DNA of 64,000 nt from positions 197,804 to 261,803 of the forward strand of contig NW_003314402.1 in the NCBI RefSeq assembly GCF_000143415.4, given 5' to 3'. Below are positions 1-51,581 of the stretch, one piece after another; position 1 is the stretch's first letter, and each line of letters begins with the position of its first letter. The notes beneath the pieces were generated by a model. That model made no database searches and had not been told where the DNA came from. It saw only the letters and a list, made by a program, of their open reading frames with translations. Source of the stretch: Selaginella moellendorffii. Taxonomy: Eukaryota; Plantae; Lycopodiophyta. The translations under genes and the position numbers were made by a program.

Positions 1-1077
1 CGATGCATCTTTCTTGACAGTGATCCATACAATGTTGTCATGGAAATGCTGCCGGACCCTCTGGTCATTGTTCACGAAGCTTGCAAGGGTGGTCTTGCCA
101 CATCCTCCCATTCCCAGGAGTCCAAACCATTTCCCCGGGGCTTGTGGATCCAGGAGGGCATTCACCACCTCATCCAGCTGCTCCCCATGGCGGCCAAACA
201 TGTCGTTGGCCTCGGGAACACCACGCCGTACATAGTTTACGAGACCTCTGTCTTGTGGACAACTCCGTACGGAAAAGCTGGTGCTCGGCTGTATCACTCT
301 CAACTCTTCTCGCTCGTACCTTTCAATGTGCGGGAGGAGATCGTTCTCGCAAGTGCGTACCAGCTCCAAAATCGCGCCAGATCGCTTCTCCCTGCGCGAC
401 AGATCCATCTTTTAGCTCCATTGCTTCAAACATGAATTCGAATAAGCCTTACTGTGATCCAAGCAGCGCTTGCGCCTTCTCAGTCCATTCAGTCAGTTCA
501 GTCAGCCACGCCTCAGCCTCACCAGAGTAGCGGAAATCTGGATTCCTGTGCTTGGGAGCATTAAACTTGTCAAGCGTGGCCTGGATTCTGGATGCCCTCT
601 TCTTTAGCTCCTCAATGTGGACATTCAGCTCATGCTCGTGACCCTGGATCTGCGACAGGAGATCGCCGTAGGCACTTAAGGACTTCGCGATCTCGTTACT
701 CCGCTTGTACCTATAGGAAGTGGAGAAGTTCAACCAGCTGCCTGCCATTTGTACACACACACACACAAAAGATAAAATGCTACTGTACCCACCGCTTTAT
801 GGGGCTCCAGATCCTGTTGTCGCGTGATCCCAAGAGTGCTTGTGCCTTGGTGTTCCATTTCCTGACACGCTCCAAGCATTCCTCGGCCGCTTCAGAGAAC
901 ATAAAGCCAGGTCCATTTCGCTCCTTGTGGCGACCGAAAGCGTTGATCTTGTCCCGGATGTGGGGCGCCGGATTTGTTCTCCAGCGTTTCAATGTTGGCA
1001 TTGCAGTCCCATACCTTCTTAGCAGGGCCCAGAGCCAAGCCACACAAGGCGCTTGCCAAGGAGCCCACAACCTCCAT
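1..1077 (-). pseudogene. NLR copy 1 (CC-CC-NB-ARC, runs off the left edge) with a frameshift in exon 1
   Basis: Same layout as copies 2-4: exon 1 793-1077, exon 2 453-710, exon 3 <1-391, which includes P-loop GMGGCGKTT. Exon 1 is 285 nt versus 278/281 nt because of a 4-nt insertion (ggat, ~970-973). This splits it into ORFs 892..1185 and 780..1172. Confidence 0.8.
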
Positions 1078-1762
1078 GGCTGTAGACCTACAAGTAAAGG
1101 TTGTCTCCCTCCCAGAAAGAAGCGCAACATTAACTCTTGACCTTGTAGATCGGAATTCTTCACTTTTTTCACAGCTGTGGCTCACTCACTCTATGAGATT
1201 CACAGTGAGCACCGCAACGATCGCTACATCGCTCGCAAAAAACACGTAAAGTACTTGTGTCTTTGGCCAAAACCCTAAACATCGACACGCCCGAGAAGAA
1301 CATCGTCTTTTCTCTTGTACGGCGTTGATCCAGGCGTACGGGAATAGAGGGCTCCTCTGCCGATCTTTGATGGGATCCGGGCGATCTTGTCACCGACGTC
1401 TTGAAAGATCTTAGATTCTATCCGCAATCGCCCAGTCAATGCGATCCTGGCAATGGGTGCTCCATATCATTCTATTCCCGCCCGGACGTGATCTCCAGGA
1501 TTTGCGAAGAAGAAGGTCGTCGATCAGATGCGCGATGCTGGCGCGCAATTGATTGGGGCTTCCCGCTACATTTTCCCGCGCTACTTCTCCATTCTAGGGT
1601 TCTTTCTTGGAGGCGACGTAGGTTTTCTATTGCCCGCGTGGTCGAGGAGACGGCGCTGGGGGGCGGCCTTGATCGGCGTTGTGGAGCTGCACAAGGTAAT
1701 GGGGCTCGACACTCCGGGTTTTAGAAATAGGAAGAGGCTCCAGCTTAAGGCTCCGACGAGCA

Positions 1763-3940: not shown

Positions 3941-5979
3941 ATGACGTGGAATCCGCCACAAGTAGCTTGTCCGCCTTGACTGCCACTACTCAGGCCGAGG
4001 ATGAACTGGGCGTGGATGTGTCGTCTCCCAGCGGCGATTTGCTGCTCCATTTTCTCAAGAGCGGTGGGGGCGACGAGCAGCTGAGGAGCAGTAGCAGCTA
4101 CAGGACCCAGCAGTCGCAGCTCACCGTCCCTGCCACAGCTTTGCTCCTTCTGGAGGACCTGGAGGAGGAGGAGAAGGTCCTCCTCCACGACCACTCTACG
4201 TCCCAGCAATAAGATTTGGTGGGTGGTCACCTCACTTCCAGCGGCACCAAGACCCACTTTTCCCTCCGGATCCATTCTTGACTCCGTCGGACCACTGATT
4301 TCTACGCTCGTTTGCTCCTCTTCCCGTTCCATCCGCCAGTGCCGTATCCTTTTCCAAATGCTCCGACTTTCCAGCCTGCTGATAATGTGGTTCATCCGCC
4401 GCATTCCTCTGGGGAGCTTAAAGCTCGTCCTGGCCTTCACTTCGAGTCTCCGGTGTTTGGACCCAGCGCAGCAGAGACCTCGGACTCCAAACGCGCCCCA
4501 GAGCAGTCGAGGAGATCGGTTACACCTGCGAAGGATGACAAGCAACAATTCCACGGCAATGGTTCCGAGCTCCTTCAGTTGTTACAGGGTGGTCCTGGTC
4601 GTGTGAAGCCCACAGCCTCCACAAAGGTGGATGCTACACAGGACAGTGGGGATTCTGGAGAGCCATCACAGAAAGGAAGTCCATCTGCTGTTCACGGCCC
4701 CATAGGACCGCCGAGGCGTCATGTCGTTTCTCCTCCGCAGAGTCCAAATGACCTCCTTGGACGTTTGTGGGCTGCTCTTCCGTCGTCAAGCCACACTTCG
4801 TTTGACGGAGAAAGCGAACGCAAGACGTCAGCCCGGAGCTTTGGCGTTGAAGTGAACGAGATGTCCCGGGAAGTCGATGGAGGTGAAGCTGCTGGTTTCG
4901 CACTTTTGAAGCGAAGGGGATCGGAGCCTGCCGCCTCGCACTACCTTTAAACGACTACGACTATAGGACTCTAAGACAAATGATAAGCCGAGGACAAACT
5001 CAGCATCCGGAAGACTACAGGACTATCGTGGGAGATACGTAAATGGAGAGGCCGAATTTGAGCCCGGAGGCGATGACTTTCGAGGTGCGGGAACGCGTCG
5101 AGTTACCGGTCGTGCAGACGCCAGACGCGGTGGTCGGGGTGCTGTTGGCCAGTGGATTGCGGTAAATGAGAGGCATAAAGATGCTGAGCCAAGTGACATC
5201 ACCTCCTGCGATATCTCTGATGGAAGGGACGAGTCGCTTAAATCTTCAAACGGGACTTAGTCGAATGCTCGGAGAAAACATCAACAGGAATGGAAGATAA
5301 AACAGGCTGACTCAAAGTCAGCATTTCCAGCGGAGAAAAAACAGGACTACAAGGTTCCAAAGGCACGGTCTTTGGCATCTCAACTTGAACGTCCAGGCTT
5401 GCCATCGGGAAGTACGCAAAACTCTTCTGTTGGTGCGGCTTTTGAGGAGTCCAAACAGAGGCTCCATAATCTAGATGCTTTGGAAGGAGAAGGCGTGACG
5501 ACCTCTCTAGATCTCGAGGAGCTACAAATTGACGGTCACCGTCGTGAGGGTAAAGCTCCACAGTTTTACAAGGTTTGTGCTTGCTTTTTTTCTTTCTTTA
5601 TTTTCATGTGTTTGTATCTCTGGTTACAACCGAAGGAGAACCGTTTCAGGGAGTCCAGACGCGTCATTCCCATGCACAGACGTGATCTTCTTTACCGACT
5701 GGATCTGCTGAATTTCACTCGTGAGCTTTTCTGGCTCTACGACGAGCTTGTACCAACTGAAGAAGGGGAGGTCCGGAGAAGGAAGTTCTTCTCGAAGCTT
5801 GAGTCCCTTTTCGAGAGGGAGCTCCCGGGAACACGGCTCTTTCTTTTCGGATCGTGTGTCAATGCGTTTGGAGTTTGTAACAGTGACATCGATGTTTGCC
5901 TCTTCGTTGATCAGGAAGAACCAAGCTGCTTGTTCAAATGGCAACTATCCTCGAGTCAGATGCCATGTTAAACGTACAG
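3941..5979 (+). pseudogene. URT1-like terminal uridylyltransferase gene fragment, unit 1
   Basis: Disordered N-terminal region with leucine motifs (GDLLLHFL, SELLQLLQ). It is followed by the nucleotidyltransferase start LVPTEEG..LFLFGSCVNAFGVCNSDIDVCL..ILESDAMLNVQ. Interrupted and truncated. Confidence 0.7.
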
Positions 5980-6039: not shown

Positions 6040-6435
6040 CCATCCTCTGATCCAGAGAACTTTCCTTTCATTGTTCTTGGCAACAAGGTCGATGTTGATG
6101 GAGGGAACGATAGAGTGGTGAGCTCTTTTGTTTCATCTCTCGCCTCACTTTAAAGCTTGTGTGTCCAGGTTTCCGAGAAGAAAGCCAAGGCTTGGTGTGC
6201 TTCCAAGGGAAACATTCCATACTTTGAGGCGTCTGCCAAGGAAGACTACAACGTGGAGGCTGCGTTTCAATGCATTGCCAAGAATGCCTTGACGAGCGAA
6301 CCCGAGGAAGACTTGTAAGTTTTGCTTGTTTCTTCTTGTGATGTTTCAAGCTCACATTTAACTTTTGGCAGCAGCTATCTTCCAGACACGATGGACAACA
6401 ACAGACGGCCAAGATCGTCTGGCTGCGAGTGTTGA
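6040..6435 (+). pseudogene. 3' fragment of a Rab7/RABG3 small GTPase gene
   Basis: [61 protein letters not shown] and terminal SSGCEC*. Introns are present and the 5' half is absent. Confidence 0.88.
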
Positions 6436-7211
6436 TCTACTACTACTGTCCCTCTATCGATAAGTGTTTTCGCTTTCATTTTATATGTTTTTTTAATTTC
6501 TTTTTATTTTTACTCTCTCCTTTCGGTCGTTGGCCTTGGATTTTTCCCTTCTCAAATTTTTTTTTTCTTTTTGCTACGAAATAATTTTTCTTCTTCGATG
6601 TTGTATCTAGTTACTACTAGTAGTGCGCAAATTCTTGTGTTTGTGTATTATTAAATTTTCTTCGTTTCTAATGGATTGCTAGTTGACGAGAATTGTGTCA
6701 CAACATGCCTAGATTTTCTCGATTCCACAAGTCTGGGTTGCAAGTAAGCAAAGGCTGTGATTGACACTGCATCACAAGAGTTTCCAATCCTTGGCAGCGA
6801 TGCAACTTCGAAGCTGTGCAACCCTTTCGTTGTCTTATTCAGCCGCCAACTTCATTGTCCAAAAGTATGGGGAATGTGGCGATGTGGATGGCTTGCACAA
6901 ACCAAACCAATCAGGATCGAGGGAGATCACTACATTGATCTCGAAAAGTGCATATTCTTAATATTGTTATGTTTTCCATGTTTTACCATTTACTCTGTAC
7001 ACCAGGTTTTAAAATACTCAAAACCACGAGAGTAAAGTAATATCCCGAGAATACGATTTGTAAGGAAAAAAAGAAACTGTTTCTTCTCCAAACGCTGCTG
7101 ACGCTGTGAAAACTCTGTTTTCGTTTTTTGATGTTCTGCTTGTGATGCAAAATGGTGTAGCATTTGCGCAGATCTTCGAAAACCCAATCGATGTCCACTG
7201 AAGGAGCAAGG

Positions 7212-10200
7212 TTATACCTCGAAGCTTATATGGACATCCGGCCGCTCCTCAAGCCATGGTGGAACTTTCGTACCTTTTTGGCAGCGTAGGACTTTGAGCC
7301 TGGGAAATAAGCCAAGGCCGTGATTGTCTGAACTCAATTGGGGCCACACTACATCATCATGATCAGAGAGCACAAGTGTCTCCAATCCTGGAAGGGATGC
7401 AATGGATGATGGAATATCTTCGATCCCATACAAGTGCACACATCTTAAAAGAGTCATCTGGTCTGTTGGCTCAAAGAAATCATTGGGGAGCTGCCTCATA
7501 CAGCCCTTCCACAAAGATAATGCGAACCGTTTCACCGTCAGCTGTGATCTCTGGGTTGGCATCAAGAGTCTCCTCATGTAACCTTCTACATCCAGTTCAT
7601 CAAGGTCTTTGGGGAGTTGTGTCACAAAGAGAGGCAAATGCTCCCATGTATTATCAGGAGCCAGATAGAATAGTAAACTCTTCAGGTTTGGAAGACTTGC
7701 GGCCAAATCGTCCTTGAACTCGGACTGTGCAATGTGTAGATTTTGAAGCTCCAGAGCTTCAAGGCATGGGAACGATCCATCCAGACTGAAGAACTGGATA
7801 CCACTGCAGTCTATGTCAAGTTCCTGTAGCCGTTGAAAGCCCTTTAACCAAGACAGGTCTTTCATTGTCTCATTGTTTGTGATACTTAAAAATTGTAGTT
7901 GTGGCCATTCAAGGCTTTCGGCATTGTTTTCACCGTCTTGTACCCCGACAATGGAAAAGTCCTCAAGCTGTTTGGAATTCTTAAACATTCGCTTCCAGTC
8001 AAGTTTGATAGTCGATTTCGCCCAAATGTGACATTGTCTTAGATTGACAAGTTGCCACAGGCCGGTGAAATCTGCAAAGTCCATGCTCTTTGCCTCCAAC
8101 ACCAGTGTCTCAATGTTCTTTAGTGCACCAAGGCTGTGAGGTATTTTTATTGTTGCACGATAGGAGAGGTCTAGCTTTAAATGTCTTAGCTTGTGTAGGC
8201 TTGAAATTCCACTCAAATCCACAGCTAACTCCTCATTGCACTCAAGCTCCAGCTCTTCCAAGTTGAATAATTGGGGCAGTAATGCAAAGTTGAATTTTCT
8301 GATCTCATCGCATTTCAAAACCTTCAGTGATGTCAAGCTGAAGAGCGCATCTGGCAATTGAGGCACACTTGAACGTCGAAGGTCAAGCACTTGAAGGTTT
8401 CTCAGCTTGGATATGCTCTCTGGAATAAAACGGACCAAATTATACCATCCATTCAAGCTCAATACCTTGACATTTTGGATGTGATCTATAATAAGACTGA
8501 CATCCACACCAGAAATTCCATGACATCCATCGAGAAGCAAGACATCTCGCACATGAATATCAGACAAAAGGCTGCTTGTAACCTTCTTTCCAATGAATGA
8601 AACTTTAGAAAATGTCGGAGAAATCCCAGGTGGACAATCATAGCCAAACAGGCATCCCTTCTCGTGCTCTTCCTGGGGTGGGTACTTCCCTTTCAAGATT
8701 CTTATGCACAGCTTGCGTACCATATCGTGCACAGTTACAGACTTATACCATGTAGAATCAGTTGTCTTCACTAGGCATCTTCGTTCCAGTTCACTAACAA
8801 TCTGCAGAGGCGAGAGTTCTGACCCAACCGCTATCCAACATTTTCTCAGATCATCAAAGCGGATTGGCCAATCTTCTGGAAACGCAGCCACATAGAGAAA
8901 GCACTCTTGCAGCTTTTCATCCTTATTAAACCGTCCCAGCTCGTCATAGCTAAACTTCAAGTGCTGGAACATCCGCTTCTCAATGTCCTCGTCATTCAAC
9001 AAATGCATCTTCTGATAGCGTTCTTTCCACACCTGTGGCCCCTCATTCCTGTAGACAGCCATGGCACTGCCAATCACTTCAAGAGCTAAAGGGAGCCCCT
9101 CACATTTGCTAGCTATTCTCTCGGCAACTTTCACAATGTCCTGATCACTAGGTAGTGAATCACGAAAGGCAAACTTCCAAAACATCTTTTCGCTCTCGGC
9201 CTCTGATAGCTCATGCACAGGAAATACCTTTGCACCTAGCTTGCTCAAAATGTCTTCCTTTCTGGTTGTTACCAGCACCCGGCTGTAAGAGGACGGCCCT
9301 GCTATAAAATCCAGTCCCTTGGCCAAGCTCATCTCCCACACATCATCCAGTATCAGCAAGACACAAAGTCCACGAGCAACATTTTGTGCCAAGTGCTGCA
9401 CATGCTCAAGGGTGCCTGCATTTTGGGCCCTCTCTTTCATGCCGCCCCATTCAAGAGCGTTGAGGAGCTGGGCCCTGAGATCGCCCTCCGATGCATCTTT
9501 CTTGACAGTGATCCATACAATGTTGTCATGGAAATGCTGCCGGACCCTCTCGTCATTGTGCACGAAGCTTGCAAGGGTGGTCTTGCCACACCCTCCCATT
9601 CCCAGGAGTCCAAACCATTTCCCCGGGGCTTGTGGATCCAGGAGGGCATTCACCACCTCATCCAGCTGCTCCCCATGGCGGCCAAACATGTCGTTGGCCT
9701 CGGGAACACCACGCCGTACATACTTTACGAGACCTCTGTCTTGTGGACAACTCCGTACGGAAAAGCTGGTGCTCGACTGCATCCCTCTCAACTCTCGCTC
9801 GTACCTTTTAATGTGCGGGAGGAGATCGTTCTCGCAAGTGCGTACCAGCTCCGAAATCGCGCCAGATCGCTTCTCCCTGCGCGACAGATCCATCTTTTAG
9901 CTCCATTGCTTCAAACATGAATTCGAATAAGCCTTACTGTGATCCAAGCAGCGCTTGCGCCGTCTTAGTCCATTCAGTCAGTTCAGTCAGCCACGCCTCA
10001 GCCTCACCAGAGTAGCGGAAATCTGGATTCCTGTCCTTGGGAGCATTAAACTTGTCAAGCGTGGCCTGGATTCTGGATGCCCTCTTCTTTAGCTCCTCAA
10101 TGTGGACATTCAGCTCATGCTCGTGACCTTGGATCTGCAATAGGAGATCGTCGTAGGCACTTAAGGACTTCGCGATCTCGTTACTCCGCTTGTACCTATA

Positions 10201-10557
10201 GGAAGTGGAGAAGTTCAACCAGCTGCCTGCCATTTCTACACACACACACACACAAAAGATAAAATGCTACTGTACCGACCGCTTTATGGGGCTCCAGATC
10301 GTGTTGTGGCGTGATCCCAAGAGTGCTTGTGCCTTGGCGTTCCATTTCCTGACACGCTCCAAGCATTTCTCGGCCGCTTGAGAGAACGTGAAGCCAGGAT
10401 TCCGCTGCTTGTGAACACTGAAAGCGTCGATCTTGTCCTGGATGTGGGGCGCCTTGTTCTCCAGCGTGTCAATGTTGGCATTGCAGTCCCATATCTTCTT
10501 AGCAGGGCCCAGAGCCAAGCCACACAAGGCGCTTGCCAAGGAGCCCACAACCTCCAT
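7212..10557 (-). CDS. NLR copy 2: tandem-CC NB-ARC-LRR protein, ~1066 aa; exons 10280-10557, 9938-10195, 7212-9876
   Basis: Motifs: P-loop GMGGCGKTT, kinase-2 LLILDDVW (non-TIR W), RNBS-B SRVLVTTR, CEGLPLAL, RNBS-D CFLYVAAFPED, VHD, then LRRs. Two GT-AG phase-2 introns (84 and 61 nt) join the upstream ORFs in frame. Confidence 0.92.
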
Positions 10558-10711
10558 GCCTGTAGACCTACAAGTAAACGTCGTCTCCCAGAACTCTTGG
10601 CCTTGGTACCCCCTCTTAAAATGAACAGTAATTTTCAGAGAGGTATAAGCTGCAGTAGAGCGAGTAGTAGAGGGCCTCGTGCAGCACCCTCCCTCTTGCA
10701 ATGCCAGCTGT

Positions 10712-10712
<1 letters not shown>

Positions 10713-10742
<30 letters not shown>
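10713..10742. repeat. (CT)n/(GA)n microsatellite upstream of the NLR; also ~25678-25708 and ~40270-40292
   Basis: Seen directly. Length varies between copies. Confidence 0.9.
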
Positions 10743-10745
<3 letters not shown>

Positions 10746-10889
10746 GCTCCGACATTGTAAGTTTCTCCAGGAGAGGTAACTTTTGTCGCTTTGTTTTAGT
10801 TGCACACAGATAGGACGCCTTCCAGCTGACTGGGCCACGTGTTTGATTGCTTTGGGTCAGGAAAGCGTACTCTGGGTCATTCTTCACTA

Positions 10890-13800
10890 TTTTTGAGACT
10901 AGAAATGTATATGGTTTTATTTTTGAACTAGGATAGTTTATATGTTTTAATATAGTTAACACTCTGGAACTTGATTTATAATATTAAGGACATCAAGGAT
11001 TATTTTAAAATTGGACTAAAACTTGATTTTCCTTATGGATTTTCAACTACATATAAAAGATGTACATTCATGTAATTTATTCATATGACAATATTCTTTT
11101 GATAAGAGCATAGGTTGTGCTGTTTAACAAACATATGATGTTTTTGACTGGAACTTTTATGAAAAAATTCCCACACTTCAATAAGAAAATAAACAAATTT
11201 ATATTGTTTTTATTTGCTGCAGAATGTCCTTTTTTAATTCTATATGAATTGGGATTGTTGGTTACAACTTCCATACATATAACATATAAATGTTCTATTG
11301 CAAACATCTTTACCACATATTTAATTCTTCCTTGGATCCTCATAATATAATCAATTGCCACTTCTATAGAATTGTCTTTATTGTTACTTTTATAGTAGTG
11401 TCCTTATTGTGGGCACCTTCTGGAAATTTGTGATAAACTACATCCAAAACTAAATAAAAGTAATTCCAAACATTGTTATAGTATGGCACAATGTAAACTT
11501 CTCTAACTAGAGTATTCATTAGTAAGATGCAAATATGATTAAATTGAATATTCCCTAAAACTAAAATATGAGAACCTATGTGGTGATATTTCATTAGAGT
11601 TCTTCTTAGTTCACCTACATAGTAACTGAGAAAAAATTATTAACTTCTACCAAAGAAATAGATAGATAGACAATTTCTCACTAGTAGTATTTAACACAAA
11701 TAAAGATTTCAATTGCACCCCTAATCCCAACTAAGAATATCTTTATAATTTGAGTAAAATATATATCACTTGGAAAACCATATAGTTATAAGCATGAAAT
11801 ATAATATGATTATTACAAACCTACCACCATAGTTGTGTTTTGCTTTTGCACTATGATCTTAGCATGTATTGCCACAATTTTTAATTCTTCCTCTTTCATG
11901 ACATTTTCTTCAACCAAATTATCATTAGGTAAACTATTCATCACTCATTCCAACATCACTAATGACAAATATAATGTTCTCTCACAAATCATATCCAAAC
12001 CCATTTGCTAGATTATATGGTTTTGACTTTCCCCCCAAATCCACTCTATTATTTGTCATCGTGCTAACTTATGCATTTTTAGTGAGAGTAAGTGTTTGCC
12101 TATGCTTATAGAAAGTAGATTTGGTGAAAAAATAACCTTTTGCTGCCCTTGTTGCAACATATGATAGATAACAATAATTTTTCTTTCATTTTTGCTTTAG
12201 TTTGGTATGAACCATTGAGATGTGTCATTTTCTGGCTAATCTAGTGATTCCAATCCCCAGACAAATATTACAATCAACATTACAAGGCAAACACATTCTT
12301 GCAAAACTTGTGAAACTTAAAAATACACGATTATCACATATCTTTTAGTGTTTTTAATGTTGTCAACCTCGTGGTTTTTTGCTGCTTTCTTTCAAAAACA
12401 TAATATTGTTATAAATATTTTTTTTGAGGTATTTTTCAAGTCCTTATTTAGCAAATTCATAATGGAGGTAGAGGAGATAAATTGCCCAATCCGTAATGCT
12501 TTTTGGGATTGGGCTTATAAGTAACATTTGATAAGCATAGAACATAGGAAGGTTAAAGCTTTTTACTTGTTTTTATTGATAGAAGTTTTTTTATTTTGGT
12601 ATCATGCTTACTTTAGCAAAAATCTTTAACTCTTTGAGTTAGATAAGGATAATTGCTTTTCTCTAAGGCTATAAAGGTTTTAGTGAAGATCTTGCTTATA
12701 TCCTTATGCATCTAATGTGCCAGTTATGTTTTTAAATGATTTTTTATTTGATTTTGGAAATCTTTTATTTACAATTCTCATATGCACTACTATTTTGTGT
12801 TGTTAGAGCTTACCATTGCATCCACAATAACATTAATATGTCTTCAATTGATCTTAATATGATGCAAGATAAATGACTATTTAAGGATGACCTGTGATTT
12901 GCAAATGATTTTGGACTTGGAAGATGATTGAGGTTGGGATCGATGGCAGAGATGGCATGCTGTTGTTTTATATTATAGCAAGGTCCACCAACCATGGTGC
13001 TATTTGGCCTATAAAGCAATTAGAATTAGTAAAGTGATGTTTTTAATTATACATTTTTTAATATAGTTATGTGTTTGGATTATTAGGGTATAAGTTGTTT
13101 GAAAGAAACTCCATACCCTAGAAGTAATTAAAGAGTCAAAATAGTCTAATGATGCAACTATAGAGATAGAGCGAGCATAATTAGCTAAAATCAATATAAG
13201 TTTGTTACTTAATTTATATATATTTTTTACATTTGAACTTCCCACATGTGAGATAGGGTTTGCATAGTAGGGTTTAGTGGGCGGCGAGATTGTAAAGGTG
13301 TTAAGTTTTGTATCTGCTTATCGTTCTATTTGAATTGACAAGCTGAGATAAGGTAAGCAATGGGTGAAAATACACAAAGTGAATCCCTTTTTTTTTCCTA
13401 AAATATTGATGACCTTAGCAAAATTGAATGGACCATTTAGCAAGGGATTGTATAAATATATTATGAGTGTTTGTTTGGCTAGAGTGTTGCCAAACTTCCA
13501 TAACAAAATTGAGAGTGATGGATTTCTTAGAAAGGATTATTTCAAGCTTAACATTCCGATATGGATGAGCATTGGAGCAAAAAAAAAGGATGCAATCCAA
13601 TTGACAAAGAAACTCAAGAATCTCAATGATTCGTCGGAATAGATATGCTATAAAAAGCATGCCCAAAATAAAAGCCCTTCACGAAAACAATAGTACCAGC
13701 CAACACTCACTTAAGAATAAAACACACCAAATCAAGGATTATAAAAATAGCAACCAAGGTTTGCAACACCAATTTTTAATGTTAAATACTCCAAGCGCTT

Positions 13801-21815: not shown

Positions 21816-22092
21816 CCTCTGAAGAACTAAAGGTATGCATATGCATATTCTTAATATTGTTATGTTTTCCATGTTTTACCATTTACTCTATACACCAGAT
21901 TTTAAAATACTCAAAACCACGAGAGTAAAGTAATATCCTGAGAATACGATTTGTAAGAAAAACAGAAACTGTGTCTTCTCCAAACGCTGCTGACGGCTTG
22001 GAAATCTCTGTTTTTGTTTTTTGAGTGATGCAAAATAGTGTAGCATTTGCGCAGATCGAGAACCCAATCGATGTCCACTGAAGGAGCAAGGT

Positions 22093-25000
22093 TTAATCCC
22101 AGAATGTTATCTGGAGATCCGGCCGCTCCTCAAGCCATGGTGGAACTTTCGTACCTTTTTGGCAGCATAGGACTTTGAGCCTGGGAAATAAGCCAAGGCC
22201 GTGATCGTCTGAACTCAATTGGGGCCACACTACATCATCATGATCAGCGAGCTCAAGAACCTCCAATCCTGGAAGGGATGCAATGGATGATGGAATATTT
22301 TCGATCGTAAACAAGGTTACACCTCTTAGAGCAGTCATCTGGTCTGTTGGCTCAAAGAAATCATTGGGGAGCTGCCTCATACAGCTCAAAAATAATGTGA
22401 ACCGTTCCACCTTCAGCTGTGATCTCTCGGTTGGCATCAAGAGTCTCCTCATGTAACCTTGTACATGCAGCAAATCAAGGTCATTGGGGAGTTGTGTCAC
22501 AAAGAGAGGCAAATGCTCCCATGTATTATCAGGAGCCAGATAGAATGTTAAACTCTTCAGGTTTGGAAGACTTGCTGCCAAATCATCCTTGAACTCCGAC
22601 TGTGCAATGTGCAGATTTTGAAGCTCCAGCCATTCGAGGCATGGGAACAATCCATCCAGACTGAAGAACTGGATACCACTGCAGTCTATGTAAAGTTCTT
22701 GTAGCCGTTGAAAGCCCTTTAGCCAAGACAGGTCTTTCATTGTCCCCATCCTTAAATATTGGAGCTGTGGCCATTCAAGGGTTTCGGCATTGTTTTCACC
22801 GTCTTGTACCCCGTCGATTGAAAAGTGCTGAAGCTGGTTGGAATTCTTAAACATTCGCTTCCAGTCAAGTTTGATAGTCGATTCCACATAAATGTGACAT
22901 CGTCTTAGATTGACAAGTTGCCACGGGCCTGTGAAATCGCCAAAGTCCATGCTCTTTGCACGCAACTCCAGTTTCTCAATGTGCACTAGTGCACCAAGGC
23001 TGTGAGGTATTTTTATTGTTGCCTTGTGGAGGCCTAGCTCTAAATGTCTTAGCTTGTGTAGGCTTGAAATTCCACTCAAATCCACAGCTAACTCCTTACC
23101 GAATTGAAGCTTCAGCTCTTCCAAGTTGAATAATTGGGGCAGTAATGCAAAGTTGAATTTTGTGGTATCATCGCATTTCAAAACCTTCAGTGATGTCAAG
23201 CTGAAGAGCGCATCTGGGAATATTGTCACACTTGAACAGGACACGCTTGAATATCGAAGGTCAAGCACTTGAAGGTTTCTCAGCTTGGATATGCTCTCTG
23301 GAATAAAACGGACCAAATTATAGCTTTCATTCAAGCTCAATACCTTGACATTTTGGATGTGATCTATAATAAGACTGACATCCACACCAGAAATTCCATA
23401 ACATCCATCGAGAAGCAAGACATCTCGCACATGAATGTCAGACAAAAGGCTGCTTGTAACCTTCTTTCCAATGAATGAAACTTTAGAAAATGTTGGAGAA
23501 ATCCCAGGTGGACAATCATAGCCAAACAGGCATCCCTTCTCGTGCTCTTCCTGGGGTGGGTACTTCCCTTTCAAGATTCTTATGCACAGCTTGCGTACCA
23601 TATCGTGCACAGTTACATACTTACGCCATTGATCATCAGTTGTCTTCACTAGGCATCTTCGTTCCAGTTCACTAACAATCTGCAGAGGCGAGAGTTCTGA
23701 CCCAACCGCTATCCAACATTTTCTCAGATCATCAAAGTGGATTGGCCAATCTTCTGGAAACGCAGCCACATAGAGAAAGCACTCTTGCAGCTTTTCATCC
23801 TTATTAGACAGCTCGTCATAGCTAAACTTCAAGCGCTGGAACATCCGCTTCTCAATGTCCCCGTCATTCAACAAATGCATCTTCTGATAGCATTCTTTCC
23901 ACACCTGCGGCCCTTTGTTCCTGTAGACAGCCATGGCACTGCCAATCACTTCAAGAGCTAAAGGGAGCCCCTCACATTTGCTAGCTATTCTCTCGGCAAC
24001 TTTCACAATGTCCGGATCACTAGGTAGTGAATCATAAAAGGCAAACTTCCAAAACATCTTTTTGCTCTCGTCCTCTGATAGCTCATGCACAGGAAATGCC
24101 TTTGCACCCAGCATGCTCAAAATGCCTTCCTTTCTGGTTGTTACCAGCACCCGGCTGTAAGAGGACGGCCCTGCTATAAAATCCAGTCCCTTGGCCCAGC
24201 TCATTTGCCACACATCATCCAGTATCAGCAAGGCACGAATTCCACGAGCAACATTTTGTGCCAAATGCTGCACATGCTCAAGGGTGCCTGCATTTTGGGC
24301 CCTCTCTCTCATGCCGCCCCATTCAAGAGCATTCAGGAGCTGGGCCCTGAGATCGTCCTCCGATGCATCTTTCTTGACAGTAATCCACACAATGTTGTCA
24401 TGGAAATGCTGCCGGACCCTCTGGTCATTGTTCACGAATCTTGCAAGGGTGGTCTTGCCACACCCTCCCATTCCCAGGAGTCCAAACCATTTCCCCGGGG
24501 CTTGTGGATCCAGGAGGGCATTCACCACCTCATCCAGCTGCTCCCCATGGCGGCCAAACATGTCGCTGGGCTCGGTAACACCATGCCGTACATAGTTTAC
24601 GAGACCTCTGTCTTGTGGACAACTCCGTACGGAAAAGCTGGTGCTCGGCTGTATCACTCTCAACTCTTCTCGCTCGTACCTTTCAATCTGCGGGAGGAGA
24701 TCGTTCTCGCAAGTGCGTACCAGCTCCGAAATCGCGCCAGATCGCTTCTCCCTGCGCGACAGATCCATCTTTTAGCTCCATTGCTTCAAACATGAATTCG
24801 AATAAGCCTTACTGTGATCCAAGCAGCGCTTGCGCCCTCGCAGTCCATTCAGTCAGTTCAGTCAGCCACGCCTCAGCCTCACCAGAGTAGCGGAAATCTG
24901 GATTCTTGTGCTTGGGAGCATTAAACTTGTCAAGCGTGGCCTGGATTCTGGATGTCTTCTTTAGCTCCTCAATGTGGACATTCAGCTCATGCTCGTGACC

Positions 25001-25432
25001 CTGGATCTGCGACAGGAGATCGCCGTGGGCACTTAAGGACTTCGCGATCTCGTCACTCCGCTTGTACCTATAGGAAGTGGAGAAGTTCAACCAGCTGCCT
25101 GCCATTTCTACACACACACACACACAAAAGATAAAATGCTACTGTACCGACCGCTTTATGGGGCTCCAGATCCTGTTGTGGCGTGATCCCAAGAGTGCTT
25201 GTGCCTTGGTGTTCCATTTCCTGACACGCTCCAAGCATTCCTCGGCCGCTTGAGAGAACATAAAGCCAGGTCCATTTCGCTCCTTGTGGTGATCGAAAGC
25301 GTTGATCTTGGCCTGGATGTGGTGCGCCTTGTTCTCCAGCGTTTCAATGTTGGCATTGCAGTCCCATATCTTCTTAGCAGGGCCCAGAGCCAAGCCACAC
25401 AAGGCGCTTGCCAAGGAGCCCACACCCTCCAT
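22093..25432 (-). CDS. NLR copy 3, ~1064 aa; exons 25152-25432, 24813-25067, 22093-24751
   Basis: Same motifs and splice sites as copy 2. Exon indels are multiples of 3. Confidence 0.92.
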
Positions 25433-25675
25433 GCCTGTAGACCTACAAGTAAAGGTCGTCTCCCAGAACTCCTGGCCTTGGTATCCCCTTTTAAAATGGA
25501 CAGTAATTTTCAGAGAGGTATAAGCTGTTACAAAGGTAAATTGGAGTTGACTGCTTGCAGTAGAGCGAGTAGAGGACCTCGTGCAGCACCCTCCCTCTTG
25601 CAATGCCAGCTGTGACCAATTGGAGTTGATTGCTTGCAGTAGAGGGCCTCGGGCAGCACCCTCCCTCTTGCAATG

Positions 25676-36475: not shown

Positions 36476-36754
36476 GACCTCTGAAGAACTAAAGGTATGC
36501 ATATGCATATTCTTAATATTGTTATGTTTTCCATGTTTTACCATTTACTCTATACACCAGATTTTAAAATACTCAAAACCACGAGAGTAAAGTAATATCC
36601 TGAGAATACGATTTGTAAGCAAAACAGAAACTATGTCTTCTCCAAACGCTGCTGACGGCTTGGAAATCTCTGTTTTTGTTTTTTGAGTTATGCAAAATAG
36701 TGTAGCATTTGCGCAGATCGAGAACCCAATCGATGTCCACTGAAGGAGCAAGGT

Positions 36755-39700
36755 TTAATCCCAGAATTTTATCTGGAGATCCGGCCGCTCCTCAAGCCAT
36801 GGTGGAACTTTCGTAGCTTTTAGGCAGCGTAGGACTTTGAGCCTGGGAAATAAGCCAAGGCCGTGATCGTCTGAACTCAATTGGGGCCACACTACATCAT
36901 CATGACCAGAGAGCTCAAGTTCCTCCAATCCTGGAAGGGATGCAATGGATGATGGAATATTTTTGATCCCCATCAAGTGCGCCCATCTTAAAAGAGTCAT
37001 CTGGTCTGTTGGCTCAAAGAAATCATTGGGGATACAGCCCTTCCACAAAAATAATGTGACGCATTTCACCTTCAGCTGTGATCTCTCGGTTGGCATCAAG
37101 AGTCTCCTCATGTAACCTTCTACATCCAGTTCATCAAGGTCTTTGGGGAGTTGTGTCACAAAGAGAGGCAAATGCTCCCATGTATTATCAAGAGCCACAA
37201 CGAATGTTAACCTCTTCAGATTTGGAAGACTTGCTGCCAAATCATCCTTGAACTCCGACTGTGCAATGTGTAGATTTTCAAGGCCCAGAAATTCAAGGCA
37301 TGGGAACGATCCATCCAGACTGAAGAACTGGATACCACTGCAGTCTAGGTGAAGTTCTCGTAGCCGCTGAAAGCCCTTTAACCAGGACAGGTCTTTCATT
37401 GTCTCATTGTTCCTGATGGTTAACAATTGTAGCTGTGGCCATTCAAGGCTTTCGGCATTGTTTTCACCGTCTTGAACCCCGTCAATCGAAAAGCCCTCAA
37501 GCTGTTTGGAATTCTTAAACATTCGCTTCCAGTCAAGTTTGATAGTCGATTTCACCATAATCTCACATCGTTTCAGATTGACAAGTTGCCACGGGCCGGT
37601 GAAATCGCCAAAGTCCATGCTCTTTGCGCACAACTTCAGTTTCTCAATGTCCACTAGTGCACCAAGGCTGCGAGGTATTTTTATTGTTGCATTGTAGAGT
37701 GTTAGCGTTAAATGTCTTAGCTTGTGTAGGCTTGAAATTCCACTCAAATCCACAGCCAGAGCTAACTCCTTAAAGGATACAAGCTCCAGCTCTTCCAAGT
37801 CGAATAATTGGGGCAGTAATGCAAAGTTGAGATTTCTGGTAGCCTTGCATTTCAAAACCTTCAGTGATGTCAAGCTGAAGAGCGCATCTGGCAATTGAGG
37901 CACATCATCGTAGGATGGAAGGTGAAGCACTTGAAGGTTTCTCAGCTTGGATATGCTCTCTGGAATAGAACGGGCCAAATTATAGCATCCATTCAAGCTC
38001 AATACCTTGACATTTTGGATGTGATCTATATCCAAACCAGAAATTTCATGAGGTCCATCGAGAAGCAAGACATCTCGCACATGAATGTCAGACAAAAGGC
38101 TGCTTGTAACCTTCTTTCCAATGAATGAAACTTTAGAAAATGTTGGAGAAATCCCAGGTGGACAATCATAGCCAAACAGGCATCCCTTCTCGTGCTCTTC
38201 CTGGGGTGGGTACTTCCCTTTCAAGATTCTTATGCACAGCTTGCGTACCATGTCGTGCACAGTTACATACTTTTCCCGAAGTATACTAGTTGTCTTCACT
38301 AGGCATCTTCGTTCCAGTTCACTAACAATCTGCAGAGGCGAGAGTTCTGACCCAACCGCTATCCAACATTTTCTCAGATGATCAAACTGGATTCGCTCAT
38401 CTTCTGGAAACGCAGCCACATAGAGAAAGCACTCTTGCAGCTTTTCATCCTTATTAAAGCGTCCCAGCTCATCATAGCTAAACTTCAAGCGCTGGAACAT
38501 CCGCTTCTCAATGTCCCCGTCATTCAACAAATGCATCTTCTCATAGCGTTCTTCCCACACCTGTGGCCCCTCATTCCTGTAGACAGCCATGGCACTGCCA
38601 ATCACTTCAAGAGCTAGAGGGAGCCCCTCACATTTGCTAGCTATTCTCTCGGCAACTTCCACAATGTCCGGATCACTAGGTAGTGAATCACGAAAGGCAA
38701 ACTTCCAAAACATCTTTTCGCTCTCGGCCTTTGATAGCTTACACACACGAAATATTTTTGCACCCAGCATGCTCAAAATGTCTTCCTTTCTGGTTGTTAC
38801 CAGCACCCGGCTGTAAGAGGACGGCCCTGTTATAAAATCCAGTCCCTCGGCCCAGCTCATGTCCCACACATCATCCAGTATCAGCAAGACACGAATTCCA
38901 CGAGCAACATTTTGTGCCAAGTGCTGCACATGCTCAAGGGTGCCTGCATTTTGGGCCCTCTCTTTCATGCCGCCCCATTCAAGAGCGTTGAGGAGCTGGG
39001 CCCTGAGATCATCCTCCGATGCATCTTTCTTGACAGTGATCCATACAATGTTGTCATGGAAATGCTGCCGGACCCTCTGGTCATTGTTCACGAATCTTGC
39101 AAGGGTGGTCTTGCCACACCCTCCCATTCCCAGGAGTCCAAACCATTTCCCCGGGTGTGGATCCAGGAGGGCATTCACCACCTCATCCACCTGCTCCCCA
39201 TGGCGGCCAAACATGTCGTTGGCCTCGGGAACACCACGCCGTTCATACTTTACGAGACCTCTGTCTTGTGGACAACTCCGTACGGAAAAGCTGGTGCTCC
39301 GCTGTATCACTCTCAACTCTTCTCGCTCGTACCTTTCAATGTGCGGGAGGAGATCGTCCTCGCAAGTGCGTACCAGCTCCGAAATCGCGCCAGATCGCTT
39401 CTCCCTGCGCGACAGATCCATCTTTTAGCTTCATTGCTTCAAACATGAATTCGAATAAGCCTTACCGTAGTGCTTGCGCCTTCTTAGTCCATTCAGTCAG
39501 TTCAGTCAGCCACGCCTCAGCCTCACCAGAGTAGCGGAAATCTGGATTCCTGTGCTTGGGAGCATTAAACTTGTCAAGCGTGGCCTGGATTCTGGATGCC
39601 CTCTTCTCTAGCTTCTCAATGTGGACATTCAGCTCATGCTCGTGACCTTGGATCTGCGACAGGAGATCGTCGTAGGCACTTAAGGACTTCGCGATCTCGT

Positions 39701-40076
39701 TACTCCGCTTGTACCTATAGGAAGTGGAGAAGTTCAACCAGCTGCCTGCCATTTCTACACACACACACACACAAAAGATAAAATGCTACTGTACCGACCG
39801 CTTTATGGGGCTCCAGATCCTGTTGTGGCGTGATCGCAAGAGTGCTTGTGCCGTGGTGTTCCATGTCCTGACACGCTCCAAGCATTTCTCGGCCGCTTCA
39901 GAGAACGTGAAGCCAGGATTCTGCTGCTTGTGAACACTGAAAGCTTCGATCTTGTCCTGGATGTGGGGCGCCTTGTTCTCCAGCGTGTCAATGTTGGCAT
40001 TGCAGTCCCATATCTTCTTAGCAGGGCCCAGAGCCAAGCCACACAAGACGCCTGTCAAGGAGCCCACAACCTCCAT
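36755..40076 (-). CDS. NLR copy 4, ~1058 aa; exons 39799-40076, 39466-39714, 36755-39404
   Basis: Same motifs. A 9-nt deletion just before the exon-2 donor keeps the frame and the GTAAGG donor. Confidence 0.92.
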
Positions 40077-40439
40077 GCCTGTAGACCTACAAGTAAACGT
40101 CGTCTCCCAGAACTCTTGGCCTTGGTACCCCTCTTAAAATGAACAGTAATTCTCAGAGAGGTATAAGCTGTTACAAGTGACTTGAGTTTAATTGGAGTTG
40201 ATTGCTTGCAGTAGAGCCCGTAGTAGAGGGCCTCGTGCAGCACCCTCCCTCTTGCAATGCCAGCTGTGGCTCTCTCTCTCTCTCTCTCTCTCATTGCTCC
40301 GACATTGTAAGTTTCTCCAGGAGAGGTAACTTTTGTCGCTTTGTTTTAGTTGCACACAGATAGGACGCCTTCCAGCTGACTGGGCCACGTGTTTGATTGC
40401 TTTGGGTCAGGAAAGCGTACTCTGGGTCATTCTTCACTA

Positions 40440-49086: not shown

Positions 49087-51307
49087 GGATCGATCACCGA
49101 CTGTGACAGTGGAGGAAGAAAGCTCGGACTATTCCCGCTCAGCACTTTCTCCGACGCTGGCGTTGGAAACGGCGGCACAGCCACCTCCAAGTCGGGCTGC
49201 TCCAGCATTTTCACCACCGGCCTGGAGCTGTCCACGCCATTGCGGACCCGGGGCTTAAAAACTTGGAGTGGAACGAGTTCGAGCGGATGATCAAGGTGGC
49301 GTTTTGATGCATCCAGCTCGACCCGCTCTCCGGCCACGTACTTTTGGAAAGCCCACACTGGAAAGTAGCGGTTCTGGCCGATTCTCGACTTGTCGTTGCC
49401 ACTGAGCAGCTCCAGTAGCACCATGCCGTAGCTGTAGACGTCCACTTTGGAAGTGATGGGACGGTCACCGACCCACACGGGTGCCATGTAACCTCGAGTT
49501 CCTCGGATGGTGGTCACGTCGAGAGCCCGCTCTTTGTCAATGAGCTTGGCCAGGCCAAAGTCCAACACCTTTGGACAGAAGTTCTCGTCGAGGAGAATGT
49601 TTTGCGGCTTGATGTCGCGGAGGATGCAATCGTAGCACTCGTGCAAGTACGTGATGCCCTTTGCAACACCAAGAGCAATCGAGAACCTGCGAACCAACTT
49701 AGTAGACAAACTTTGGAAAGATCACGAACATACCTCGTTCCCCAGAGATCGATACACTCTTGGTCCAGTGATCCGTTGCTCAGGAACTCGTAGACGAGTA
49801 AACGATGGCTTCCCTCAGCGCAGTAGCCCAAAAGTTTCACTAAGTTGACGTGATGAACCCTTCCAAGGGTCGTGTTTCTCGCCGTGGCACCGTCATATCC
49901 GGAAGAACACCCTTGTAAACACTTCCGAATCCACCGGCCCCGAGCTTGCAGCTAAAATGGTTTGTGGCAACTTCCGGCTGCTCGTACGAGAACCATGTCG
50001 GGCCGCGGTGATTCTTGGAGGCTTTCTTCCACATTCCACGAAGTGATCTTCGCCAGCAGAACCACGCCGCCGCCGCAATGCACAAGAAAAGGGCGAGCTC
50101 TCCAATTGCGATACCCGCGTCGGAGAAGTAACTCCAATTTCTCAAGGAATCGGTATCCAGGACCGTCACAAACACGTCCTCGGAGAAAGAAGTTGTCGAT
50201 GGATCCAGTGCCGAAACTTTGAGAAGTGCGATGGAGGTCCGCTCCATTCCCTGGACACCATTGAAGAGTTTTCCATCTTCACCACCAAGAAGACTACACC
50301 GTTTTGTCCCCGCGAGCATGTACGTAGCACCCAGGCAGCGGCAATCCTTCAAACAAGAGTCCTTGCACTGCTCGAGGGAAATCGGATCTTTGGATAGTTG
50401 TTGCAAAAGATTTCCAACGTACATGGCCCTCGGAACTTCCACCATCTTGCTCGCAGAAGAAGTAGCGTTGCCAGAAGAACAGCTGAGTGGAAAAGTTGCG
50501 GACGCATCCGGCCGATTCACTGGAATCCACAGCATGAAATCCCGGTGGACACGAACAGCACTTCCTCGGCTTGTATCCACACAAGCCAAAAGCTCCACGA
50601 GCAATGCCGACTGCCATACCACTCTCCGCTGCCACAGCTATAACTCCTCAACGTTCCATTTTTTTCCAGCGTGAGACTCCGCTCGTATTGCCGAGATCTA
50701 TCGGGTACTTTTGAGCGTTGTCGAATTTGTAGCGGTACCAGGAGCTTCCGTTGGCATAAAAAAAGGCAAGATGACCATCGATGCCGAAAGTGAACTTCGG
50801 AGTGGAAGTCATTGTCAAGTCTGAGGTGTTGAGCTGCTTGTTGATGATGCCCCAGTAGGATTGATTCAAGTAGTCTTGGAAGTAAAGTTCAATACCCTGC
50901 CTGTTCATGCTAAGCCGGTATTTTCCAGCGACCAAACTCGTATTTTCACGAAGTTCTTGTCCTGGAAGGAGGGTATCTGTTGGGAAGTTAAAACTTTGCC
51001 AAATCCTGTCCGAGCTACGGTCAAGCAGCACGAGGTTGCCAGTTTCTTGCAAGGATGCGGCGGTGATAGAACAATTATCACAGCGGACAAGCCATACTAT
51101 CATGGACTTGTCTGTAATCACGAGTCCAATTTCTTTAAGATCGAGCTCTCCAGTTTTGCCTACTTTGATCCTCCGTTTCTCAGTCGTACTATTGTTCTTG
51201 ATGAGCACTTCAGTGGCCTCCCATCAGATTGCGAGAGTAAAGAGTGAACTCCAAAACCTAGAACTACAATTTGACTTGGTCAATGTCAACTGCGAGATAT
51301 CCTCCAT
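49080..51307 (-). pseudogene. G-type lectin S-domain (SD2-like) receptor kinase pseudogene
   Basis: B-lectin LQETGNLVL..WQSFNFPTDTLLPGQ; EGF CSCPPGF; PAN CKDSCLKDCRC; kinase [46 protein letters not shown]. These are split over several frames. Confidence 0.9.
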
Positions 51308-51466: not shown

Positions 51467-51581
51467 TGGGCTTTGATCAATTCAATCCGGGAACGTAACT
51501 CCATACGAAAGAATCACATAGCTTAAAACGATAGAACTGCCAAAAAGAAGAAAAACTTGGTGAGAGAAAGCTTTGGAAAAC

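Follow-up and report, generated by a model that had tools for sequence, protein, structure and literature searches.

Organization of the locus

The stretch of DNA considered here (the window; 64,000 nt of contig NW_003314402.1 of the lycophyte Selaginella moellendorffii) carries a tandem array of genes for receptors of the nucleotide-binding leucine-rich repeat type (NLRs), and one of these, called copy 1 in what follows, is the main subject of this analysis. Copy 1 lies on the minus strand, and its three exons (10557-10280, 10195-9938 and 9876-7212) join into a frame of 3201 nt that contains no internal stop and encodes 1066 amino acids (aa) with the order coiled coil (CC), NB-ARC domain and leucine-rich repeats (LRR), as is typical of the CC-NLRs (CNLs). 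In the N-terminus of the protein, a block of three helices (a2, a3 and a4) occurs twice, as units A and B, behind a single first helix (a1). The features of copy 1 are as follows.

10280 to 10557, minus strand: exon 1; start codon at 10557-10555, hydrophobic helix a1, then a2 and a3 of unit A; ends in ...WSPIKR with the R codon split (phase 2); seen in RNA depth and in a joint
10196 to 10279, minus strand: intron 1; 84 nt, GT..AG, phase 2
9938 to 10195, minus strand: exon 2; 258 nt, symmetric (phase 2 at both ends); a4 of unit A, then a2' and a3' of unit B; an RNA contig spans 9937-10196
9877 to 9937, minus strand: intron 2; 61 nt, GT..AG, phase 2; site homologous to that of intron 1
7212 to 9876, minus strand: exon 3; a4' of unit B, a linker of ~40 aa, NB-ARC (P-loop GMGGCGKTTL, VHD), LRR and stop codon
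10114 to 10488, minus strand: repeat unit A; residues 24-120, comprising a2, a3, intron 1 and a4
9789 to 10113, minus strand: repeat unit B; residues 121-208, comprising a2', a3', intron 2 and a4'; a block of 87-88 residues that is missing from the single-CC paralog P0019

The ATG at 10557-10555 opens the sequence MEVVGSLASALCGLAL... of exon 1. The donor GT of intron 1 (10279-10278) follows ...WSPIK-CG and its acceptor AG (10197-10196) precedes G-TAC-AAG, where YKRSNEIAK begins; the donor GT of intron 2 (9937-9936) follows ...LLGS-CA and its acceptor AG (9878-9877) precedes G-GAG-AAG (EKRSGAISE). Across the two junctions, the joined product reads ...WSPIKR/YKRSNEIAK... and ...LLGSQ/EKRSGAISE.... 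Intron 1 itself includes, besides a (GT)n run, a stop three codons past the donor and an in-frame ATG (MAGSWLNFSTSYR-).

In an initial annotation of the window, it had been proposed that two small open reading frames (ORFs) join the NB-ARC-LRR ORF downstream of them through two phase-2 GT-AG introns, and this was borne out, with the intron borders at the proposed coordinates and an open frame of 1066 aa. The further statement that the gene is hidden as separate small ORFs had to be given up, as RefSeq already holds the three-exon gene: when the splice pattern of copy 1 is applied to copies 2 and 3 of the array, the resulting proteins are residue-identical to the S. moellendorffii models P0009 (1064 aa) and P0012 (1058 aa), which are the spliced copies 2 and 3, respectively. 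From this identity and from the RNA joints described below, it was concluded that the gene is real and spliced as proposed, yet already annotated.

The motifs GMGGCGKTTL, LILDDVW, GLPLAL and VHD are found in the translation; an EDVID motif cannot be seen, and VHD stands in the place of MHD, both as noted earlier. Pfam searches returned NB-ARC (E 9e-39) and LRR_14 (E 1.9e-25), and also LRR_4 and LRR_8, while the separate exon pieces of the N-terminus gave nothing useful. Among the RefSeq isoforms of paralogs, P0003 and P0013 have an ORF that reaches 120-160 residues upstream of MEVVGS through a (GA)n-encoded ERERER stretch, and some others attain 1117-1399 aa by C-terminal extensions; these extended isoforms look like alternative or over-extended models.

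A repeated helical unit in the N-terminus

The homology of exon 1 and exon 2 is clear from their local alignment, which scores 123 under BLOSUM62, while shuffled sequences average 24 (z = 22) and none of 2000 shuffles attains that value; an earlier hand count of 25 identities in 57 positions was reproduced. It was also observed that the likeness crosses the exon borders, in that YKRSNEIAKSL..DLLLQIQGHEHEL, with which exon 2 begins, matches EKRSGAISELV..DLLPHIKRYEREL, the beginning of exon 3. Since the similarity runs over these borders, the true repeat unit is a2-a3-(intron)-a4, with a length of about 88-97 residues. On comparing the paralog profiles of units A and B by hhalign, a probability of 99.7% was obtained (E 1.1e-25, 41% identity, 86 columns).

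The layout a1-[a2a3a4]-[a2a3a4], with the hydrophobic a1 helix in the first unit only, was upheld, and both phase-2 introns lie at homologous sites. Unit B starts at a2' immediately past a4 and no second a1 is present. The RNPxF loop and the AQALLGS motif vary little or not at all among the paralogs with the doubled layout. AlphaFold places helices at residues 4-52 (a1 running into a2), 61-85, 91-117, 120-148 (broken), 156-177 and 183-212, a predicted pattern that fits a1-[a2 a3 a4]-[a2' a3' a4']; six or seven helices are modelled in the N-terminus, with unit B and the packing as a whole predicted at low confidence.

Transcription and splicing

RNA-derived contigs from four runs of four independent studies were placed on positions 6900-11100, with two microsatellites (10704-10750 and 10230-10266) skipped as repeats; paralogs at 93-97% identity also map to copy 1 in such a placement. 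A joint that skips exactly 9877-9937 (61 nt, after a stated +1 shift; CT..AC ends on the plus strand) was found in all four runs, and one that skips 10196-10279 (84 nt) in three of the four, the fourth run having at 10196 a loose end whose letters are the final bases of exon 1. The proposed junctions 10279/10196 and 9937/9877 are hence both present in RNA, and exon 2 is covered over its full length between the junctions by a contig of 260 nt. Upstream of ~10706 the RNA depth is zero, which fits a transcription start shortly before the ATG. The microsatellite at 10704-10750, a (GA/CT)n repeat, lies just upstream of the transcribed region, and the one at 10230-10266 is the (GT)n run inside intron 1.

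Contigs that retain intron 1 (10167-10307) occur in three runs at about one third of the spliced depth, and they bear on the question of whether the gene switches between isoforms. In such a switch, skipping of exon 2 would restore the ancestral single-CC receptor, and retention of intron 1 would give either a peptide with the first CC only or a receptor lacking a1. The frame arithmetic holds for both events, exon 2 being symmetric, and intron 1 is identical at 84 of 84 positions in the three complete copies of the array. Moreover, the intronic ATG is the start of the RefSeq isoform X3 (P0001, P0002), a form that would lack a1-a3. However, this ATG is missing from the 53-nt intron 1 of the paralogs P0015 and P0017, the unspliced contigs may be pre-mRNA or DNA carry-over, and no joint of exon 1 with exon 3 was found in the four runs, though contigs drop rare forms. 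Isoform switching on its own is regarded as an improbable explanation of the duplication.

Origin of the duplication

The paralog P0019 (946 aa, 47% identical overall) has a single CC and aligns to the doubled proteins with one clean gap of 87 residues, which corresponds to exactly one unit. Its gene contains a single phase-2 GT..AG intron of 63 nt, which splits the R codon of KVR/YERYG, a position homologous to that of each intron in the doubled genes. In P0015 and P0017, two divergent paralogs (~65% identical) with the doubled layout, the two phase-2 introns occupy the sites that they have in copy 1. In a tree of NB-ARC domains, the 12 doubled proteins form one clade (98% in the Shimodaira-Hasegawa-like approximate likelihood ratio test, SH-aLRT), with P0019 as its sister (100%). 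The synonymous divergence (Ks) between units A and B within one gene is ~0.84, while it is 0.4-0.6 between the doubled subclades I and II and at least 1.5 (saturated) to P0019.

Given that P0019 lacks exactly one unit and has one matching phase-2 intron, and in view of the clade structure and the order of the Ks values, a single intragenic tandem duplication of [a2-a3-phase-2 intron-a4] would have occurred after the split from P0019 and before the two doubled subclades diverged. This origin, together with the anatomy described above, is judged from the sequences to be almost certain. The family multiplied afterwards by tandem gene duplication, with a period of ~14.7 kb in the window.

Intact ORFs (1051-1082 aa or more) with the introns of copy 1 are found in at least 12 paralogs, spread over several scaffolds, and at least a dozen paralogs lie on other scaffolds. 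A word-index search with residues 1-215 returned 16 proteins, all of them from S. moellendorffii, a result that gives no measure of how far the layout extends to other Selaginella species. A profile search for the doubled N-terminus in 1.84 billion representatives returned only P0015, P0002 and P0019, together with three spurious low-complexity repeat proteins (P0121-P0123).

Selection on the two units

Relative to P0015 and P0017 (Ks ~0.5), nonsynonymous divergence divided by synonymous divergence (Ka/Ks) is 0.41-0.49 for unit B, 0.41-0.49 for NB-ARC, 0.46-0.53 for LRR and 0.60-0.94 for unit A. As the value of unit B equals that of NB-ARC, selection has maintained unit B no less strictly than the other parts of the receptor; the unit shows purifying selection and cannot be called a decaying spacer. 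For the three complete copies of the window, Ks is ~0.06 and Ka/Ks is ~1 in every segment; these copies are too shallow to judge constraint, and the comparison with P0015 and P0017 was used instead.

The values for unit B have to be set against the view that it is a tolerated structural passenger, that is, a helical linker with no specific role beyond frame and solubility. A passenger of this kind would be compatible with the low predicted local distance difference test (pLDDT) values of unit B, with its lack of detectable similarity to the CCs of other plants (4.6%) and with the tolerance of CNLs for varied N-terminal lengths, their P-loop lying anywhere from residue 179 to 317. Constraint equal to that of NB-ARC over a Ks of ~0.5, a unit B that is intact in 12 of 12 doubled paralogs and the (nearly) invariant RNPxF and AQALLGS motifs speak against it, and the passenger view is considered rather unlikely.

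The Ka/Ks of ~1 in every segment among the window copies might also be expected if the apparent doubling came from mis-assembly or the genes formed a decaying pseudogene family. That an artefact of either kind underlies the data is scarcely credible: spliced RNA occurs in four studies, at least 12 intact paralogs on several scaffolds share the introns, purifying selection is seen at greater depth, and the window copies, which differ by ~7%, contain neither a stop nor a frameshift.

Variation among the window copies is unevenly distributed. Besides the identical intron 1, the three complete copies differ by 1 nt in intron 2 and by ~6-7% in the exons, and with the partial fourth copy included the introns are identical or 1-4 positions apart. 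In codons 1-248 of the four copies, nonsynonymous differences exceed silent ones 2-4-fold (Fisher p 0.001-0.03 in four of the six pairs, which are non-independent), and in the first 60 NB-ARC codons the nonsynonymous proportion is below the synonymous one (pN < pS) in five of the six pairs. The excess in codons 1-248 may point to diversifying selection in the region of the two CC units and the linker, or else to gene conversion.

This pattern is relevant to a regulatory role of unit B, which could be auto-inhibitory, its vacant a1 groove sequestering a1 or a4 at rest, or could be that of a decoy for CC-targeting effectors, and which would tune activation. The core residues of unit A are retained in unit B, which has no a1 of its own and is under purifying selection, and a nonsynonymous excess beside near-identical introns is what an arms-race surface would produce. 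Nevertheless, the codon counts are small and the pairs non-independent, gene conversion could yield the same substitutions, and the AlphaFold models show no confident docking of a1 on unit B. A regulatory or decoy function is conceivable, but on balance it is unlikely.

Relationship of the first coiled coil to other plant CCs

A resemblance of the CC to that of RPS2 and RPS5 (CCG10) had been suggested in the initial annotation, and this was not supported. In hhalign comparisons of the first CC with angiosperm G10-type N-termini, the probability was 18.6% over 22 columns at the start of a4, around RYKRS/SYKLGK. Against the bryophyte CCs of the MAEPL/OG6/CblN type, it was 97.3% (E 1.8e-11, 107 columns), and this alignment pairs residues 3-113 with 9-117, which is the whole a1-a4 domain. 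Unit B alone gave no match to the bryophyte-type CCs (probability 4.6%). Scores with a G10 hidden Markov model were 6-10 bits; in four members, 0-4 of 1500 shuffles scored higher (p ~0.001-0.003), and for P0019 168 of 1500 did. On these profiles, the first CC (a1 and unit A) is taken to be homologous to the MAEPL/CblN-type CC of non-flowering plants.

The NB-ARC tree, which is unrooted, was obtained by a quick search and has a long Selaginella branch (1.67), contains a split with 99% SH-aLRT between the seed-plant CNLs on one side and the Selaginella and bryophyte CNLs on the other. The G10-type angiosperm NB-ARCs form a 99% clade on the opposite side of this split, and the EDVID-type seed-plant clades are likewise apart from Selaginella. 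Membership in CCG10 was rejected because the NB-ARC lies outside the G10/ANL clade and the profile similarity is weak. The RefSeq names and the best angiosperm matches belong to the CCG10 (RPS2/RPS5) group. The ANL/G10 clade (ANL in the sense of Lee et al. 2020, PMC7756659) has been published as limited to seed plants or angiosperms and as absent from Selaginella, and the CC-NLRs of non-angiosperms have been reported to form a separate 'Cbl-N' group; the NB-ARC placement and the CC profile agree with both of these reports.

The extreme N-terminal MAEPL-type motif was reported to be essential in the CCs of that type, with published alignments showing MAE-LVSV, MVEPIAVS and MADPLFTP (Chia et al. 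2024, PMC11218826). The Selaginella protein starts with ME(V/G)VGSLAS, and its alignment to the MAEPL-type CCs begins at bryophyte residue 9.

Other evidence on the identity of the CC points in the same direction, although it is soft. The Pfam Rx_N match to the intact N-terminus is in register and below threshold (16.9 bits vs a cutoff of 27.7; E 0.007), and 52 of 100 feature neighbours in the ESM Atlas are Rx_N clusters; the structural matches given below belong to the same body of evidence. A sequence search of the PDB with a profile of the first CC returned only insignificant SNAP-25 coils.

Structure models and the putative roles of the two units

With the N-terminal AlphaFold model as query, Foldseek found nothing in the PDB below E 0.27. 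By VIA-align, model residues 3-124 could be placed on the CCs of ZAR1, NRC2, NRC3, NRC4 and Sr35 with Z 9.3-10.6, and these accounted for seven of the top 13 matches. The N-terminal model also resembles two consecutive three-helix bundles, namely the spectrin-like repeats of EzrA (Z 9.0, residues 17-207). The full-length model has a pLDDT of 82.6, with a good NB-ARC-LRR part and N-terminal units that are not confidently placed; over a part that does not include residues 1-235, it matched the NB-ARC of NRC1 (Z 27.5, 25% identity), resting NRC2 (Z 27) and LRR proteins (Z 20-25). The chassis of the receptor is that of a canonical CNL.

NB-ARC starts at about residue 238 as compared with about 152, and the difference is one unit. 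The P-loop lies at ~270 in the doubled Selaginella proteins and at 179 in P0019; among the bryophyte and other non-seed-plant CNL matches listed, it is found at 268-285 in most cases and at 317 in one. The bryophyte CNLs of the MAEPL type (P0040, P0050, P0070 and others), whose P-loop is at ~270-285, have about 100 extra, non-repeated, helix-rich residues between CC and NB-ARC, a stretch that seems to have been little discussed and whose length matches that of the doubled Selaginella CC. The duplication may have restored an N-terminal length that the bryophyte relatives reach with non-repeated sequence.

In the mechanism proposed here, a1 and unit A would form a canonical four-helix CC, the putative membrane-acting executioner of a resistosome-forming CNL. 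Unit B would be a diverged three-helix copy that has no a1 and keeps the ancestral a4'-linker-NB-ARC junction, and it would serve as a conserved neck or spacer between CC and NB-ARC, possibly with a regulatory part. A functional division of labour of this kind, with a1 and unit A as executioner and unit B as neck, is offered tentatively, at somewhat less than even odds. Taken as a whole, the best explanation of the data is that copy 1 is an expressed CNL of the main family of this species, whose doubled layout arose by tandem duplication of [a2-a3-intron-a4] and in which unit A would act as executioner and unit B as neck; we assign it a probability of about 60%.

Several points weigh against this explanation. 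The RNA joints come from short unitigs with 27-29 nt on the shorter flank, and among the contigs of the four runs no single RNA record spans exons 1, 2 and 3. A Z of ~10 can be reached by unrelated helical bundles, according to the warning of the alignment tool. The pLDDT is 45-73 in unit B and below 50 in a1, and the predicted template modelling score (pTM) of the N-terminal model is 0.43, so that the packing of the N-terminal helices is not established. The extreme N-terminal MAEPL-type motif, by comparison with the published sequences, may be shortened in the Selaginella protein. Lastly, the Ka/Ks of ~1 among the recent tandem copies could reflect relaxed constraint instead of diversifying selection.

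A more far-reaching proposal is that unit B is a lineage-specific control element of the resistosome, which would auto-inhibit a1 or a4 or lift the bundle off the NB-ARC ring, and which would at the same time present a diversifying surface targeted by pathogens and be subject to a splice switch between seven-helix, four-helix and a1-less forms. We regard this combination as speculative, with the odds clearly against it.

Comparison with known systems

The initial annotation had stated that the layout was not recognised in characterised NLRs. This turned out to be too broad, as predicted tandem CC-CC-NLRs had been reported from Marchantia polymorpha (Mp3g09180 and Mp3g09210), and both of the Marchantia CCs had been assayed, cell death being observed with the internal CC of Mp3g09210 only (Chia et al. 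2024, Plant Cell, PMC11218826). The Marchantia and Selaginella proteins have in common two CC-type modules before one NB-ARC-LRR, their occurrence in a non-flowering plant and the OG6/CblN-type CC group, and in Marchantia the two modules appear functionally unequal. The arrangement is different, however. In Marchantia the tandem is one of whole domains, an external CC being followed by a complete NB-ARC-proximal CC with its own MAEPL N-terminus (the internal construct starts with MAELVSV; Chia et al. 2024 supplement, PMC11218826), whereas in Selaginella an a2-a4 sub-domain with its intron is repeated behind a single a1. The tree and the dating of the duplication within Selaginella suggest that the two doublings arose independently.

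The bryophyte, lycophyte and fern NLRs of the CC(MAEPL)/CblN type (Chia et al. 2024; Castel et al. 2025, PMC12512272) share with the Selaginella family a homologous first CC, the side of the NB-ARC tree and a long region before the P-loop. They differ from it in that the Selaginella N-terminus is shorter (ME-VVGS...), an extra repeated unit is present and the branch is long (1.67). In the other 100-odd NLR matches that have a recognisable P-loop and a scannable N-terminus, no comparable N-terminal self-repeat was found, the scores being at most 47, against 116-175 in the doubled proteins.

With the seed-plant CCG10-NLRs (RPS2, RPS5, RFL1 and SUMM2), the Selaginella proteins share the absence of EDVID and a 'RY-K/G-R/K-x-x-I' sequence at the start of a4 (RYKRS vs SYKLGK), but the profile similarity is weak and the Selaginella NB-ARC falls outside the G10 clade. 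Residues 3-124 superpose from N-terminus to N-terminus on the CCs of known resistosomes (ZAR1 6j5t, NRC2 9fp6, NRC3 9ri9, NRC4 9cc8 and Sr35 7xc2) with a root-mean-square deviation of 1.9-4.2 A. In those CNLs a4 leads straight to NB-ARC at ~150, whereas in Selaginella about 85 more residues (unit B) intervene and NB-ARC is found at ~238. The strawberry RPW8-RPW8 and RPW8x3 proteins and the 'CC-CC-NBS-LRR' classes of surveys likewise have a repeated N-terminal signalling domain; these catalogue entries come from coil or domain predictors and include no demonstration of repeat homology, no intron data and no analysis of selection; the strawberry proteins are not NLRs.

In the literature on CC-CC architectures and on Selaginella NLRs, no description of the Selaginella duplication was found. 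While the CC-CC-NLR layout as such is not new, the sub-domain duplication in Selaginella is real and moderately new. S. moellendorffii is a model lycophyte that is usually described as having almost no NLRs, or 'NBS-only' genes; the surveys list 2 NLRs, or 16 NBS-only genes, or 10 (NBARC) and 3 (NBARC)(LRR) genes, with no CC class. The main expanded NLR family of this species is nonetheless a full-length, expressed CNL, the CC of which has been overlooked, being divergent and distributed over small exons.

A clean and datable sub-domain duplication of this type provides a natural experiment on what insert is tolerated between the a1-a4 bundle and NB-ARC without loss of the resistosome, and on which helices must adjoin NB-ARC. 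It also supplies a second case, beside Marchantia, for asking whether NLRs of non-seed plants have innovated repeatedly through repetition of the N-terminal domain. In practical terms the gain is modest and consists in better annotation of lycophyte NLRs and in ideas for engineered CC domains.

The tandem array and neighbouring genes

All copies in the window have the doubled layout, three of them being complete and a fourth partial. Apart from copy 1, the array comprises the following features.

22093 to 25432, minus strand: copy 2; exons 25432-25152, 25067-24813 and 24751-22093; product identical to RefSeq P0009 (1064 aa)
36755 to 40076, minus strand: copy 3; exons 40076-39799, 39714-39466 and 39404-36755; product identical to RefSeq P0012 (1058 aa)
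1 to 1109, minus strand: partial copy 4; exon 1, exon 2 and the 5' part of exon 3, cut by the edge of the window
24752-24812, 25068-25151, 39405-39465 and 39715-39798, minus strand: introns of copies 2 and 3, matching those of copy 1

The repeated segments of the array are 1-1109, 6949-10652, 21842-25527 and 36504-40170, and much of the sequence between the copies is also repeated, at 88-98% identity.

On the plus strand, a single-exon ORF of 858 aa at 51573-54149 encodes a G-type lectin S-domain receptor-like kinase (B_lectin, S_locus_glycop, PAN and Pkinase), so that another putative class of immune receptor adjoins the NLR array. At 49840-51208, the minus strand contains fragmentary ORFs that resemble pieces of a receptor-like kinase gene of this type. 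Exon-like ORFs on the plus strand at 5372-5971 and 6157-6318 match a nucleotidyltransferase of the terminal uridylyltransferase (TUTase)/poly(A) polymerase type and the C-terminal part of a Ras/Rab GTPase, respectively. The segment 4051-5650, which includes the start of the nucleotidyltransferase ORF only, recurs in the repeat units of the array, and the Rab exon is without a repeat match in the self-comparison of the window.

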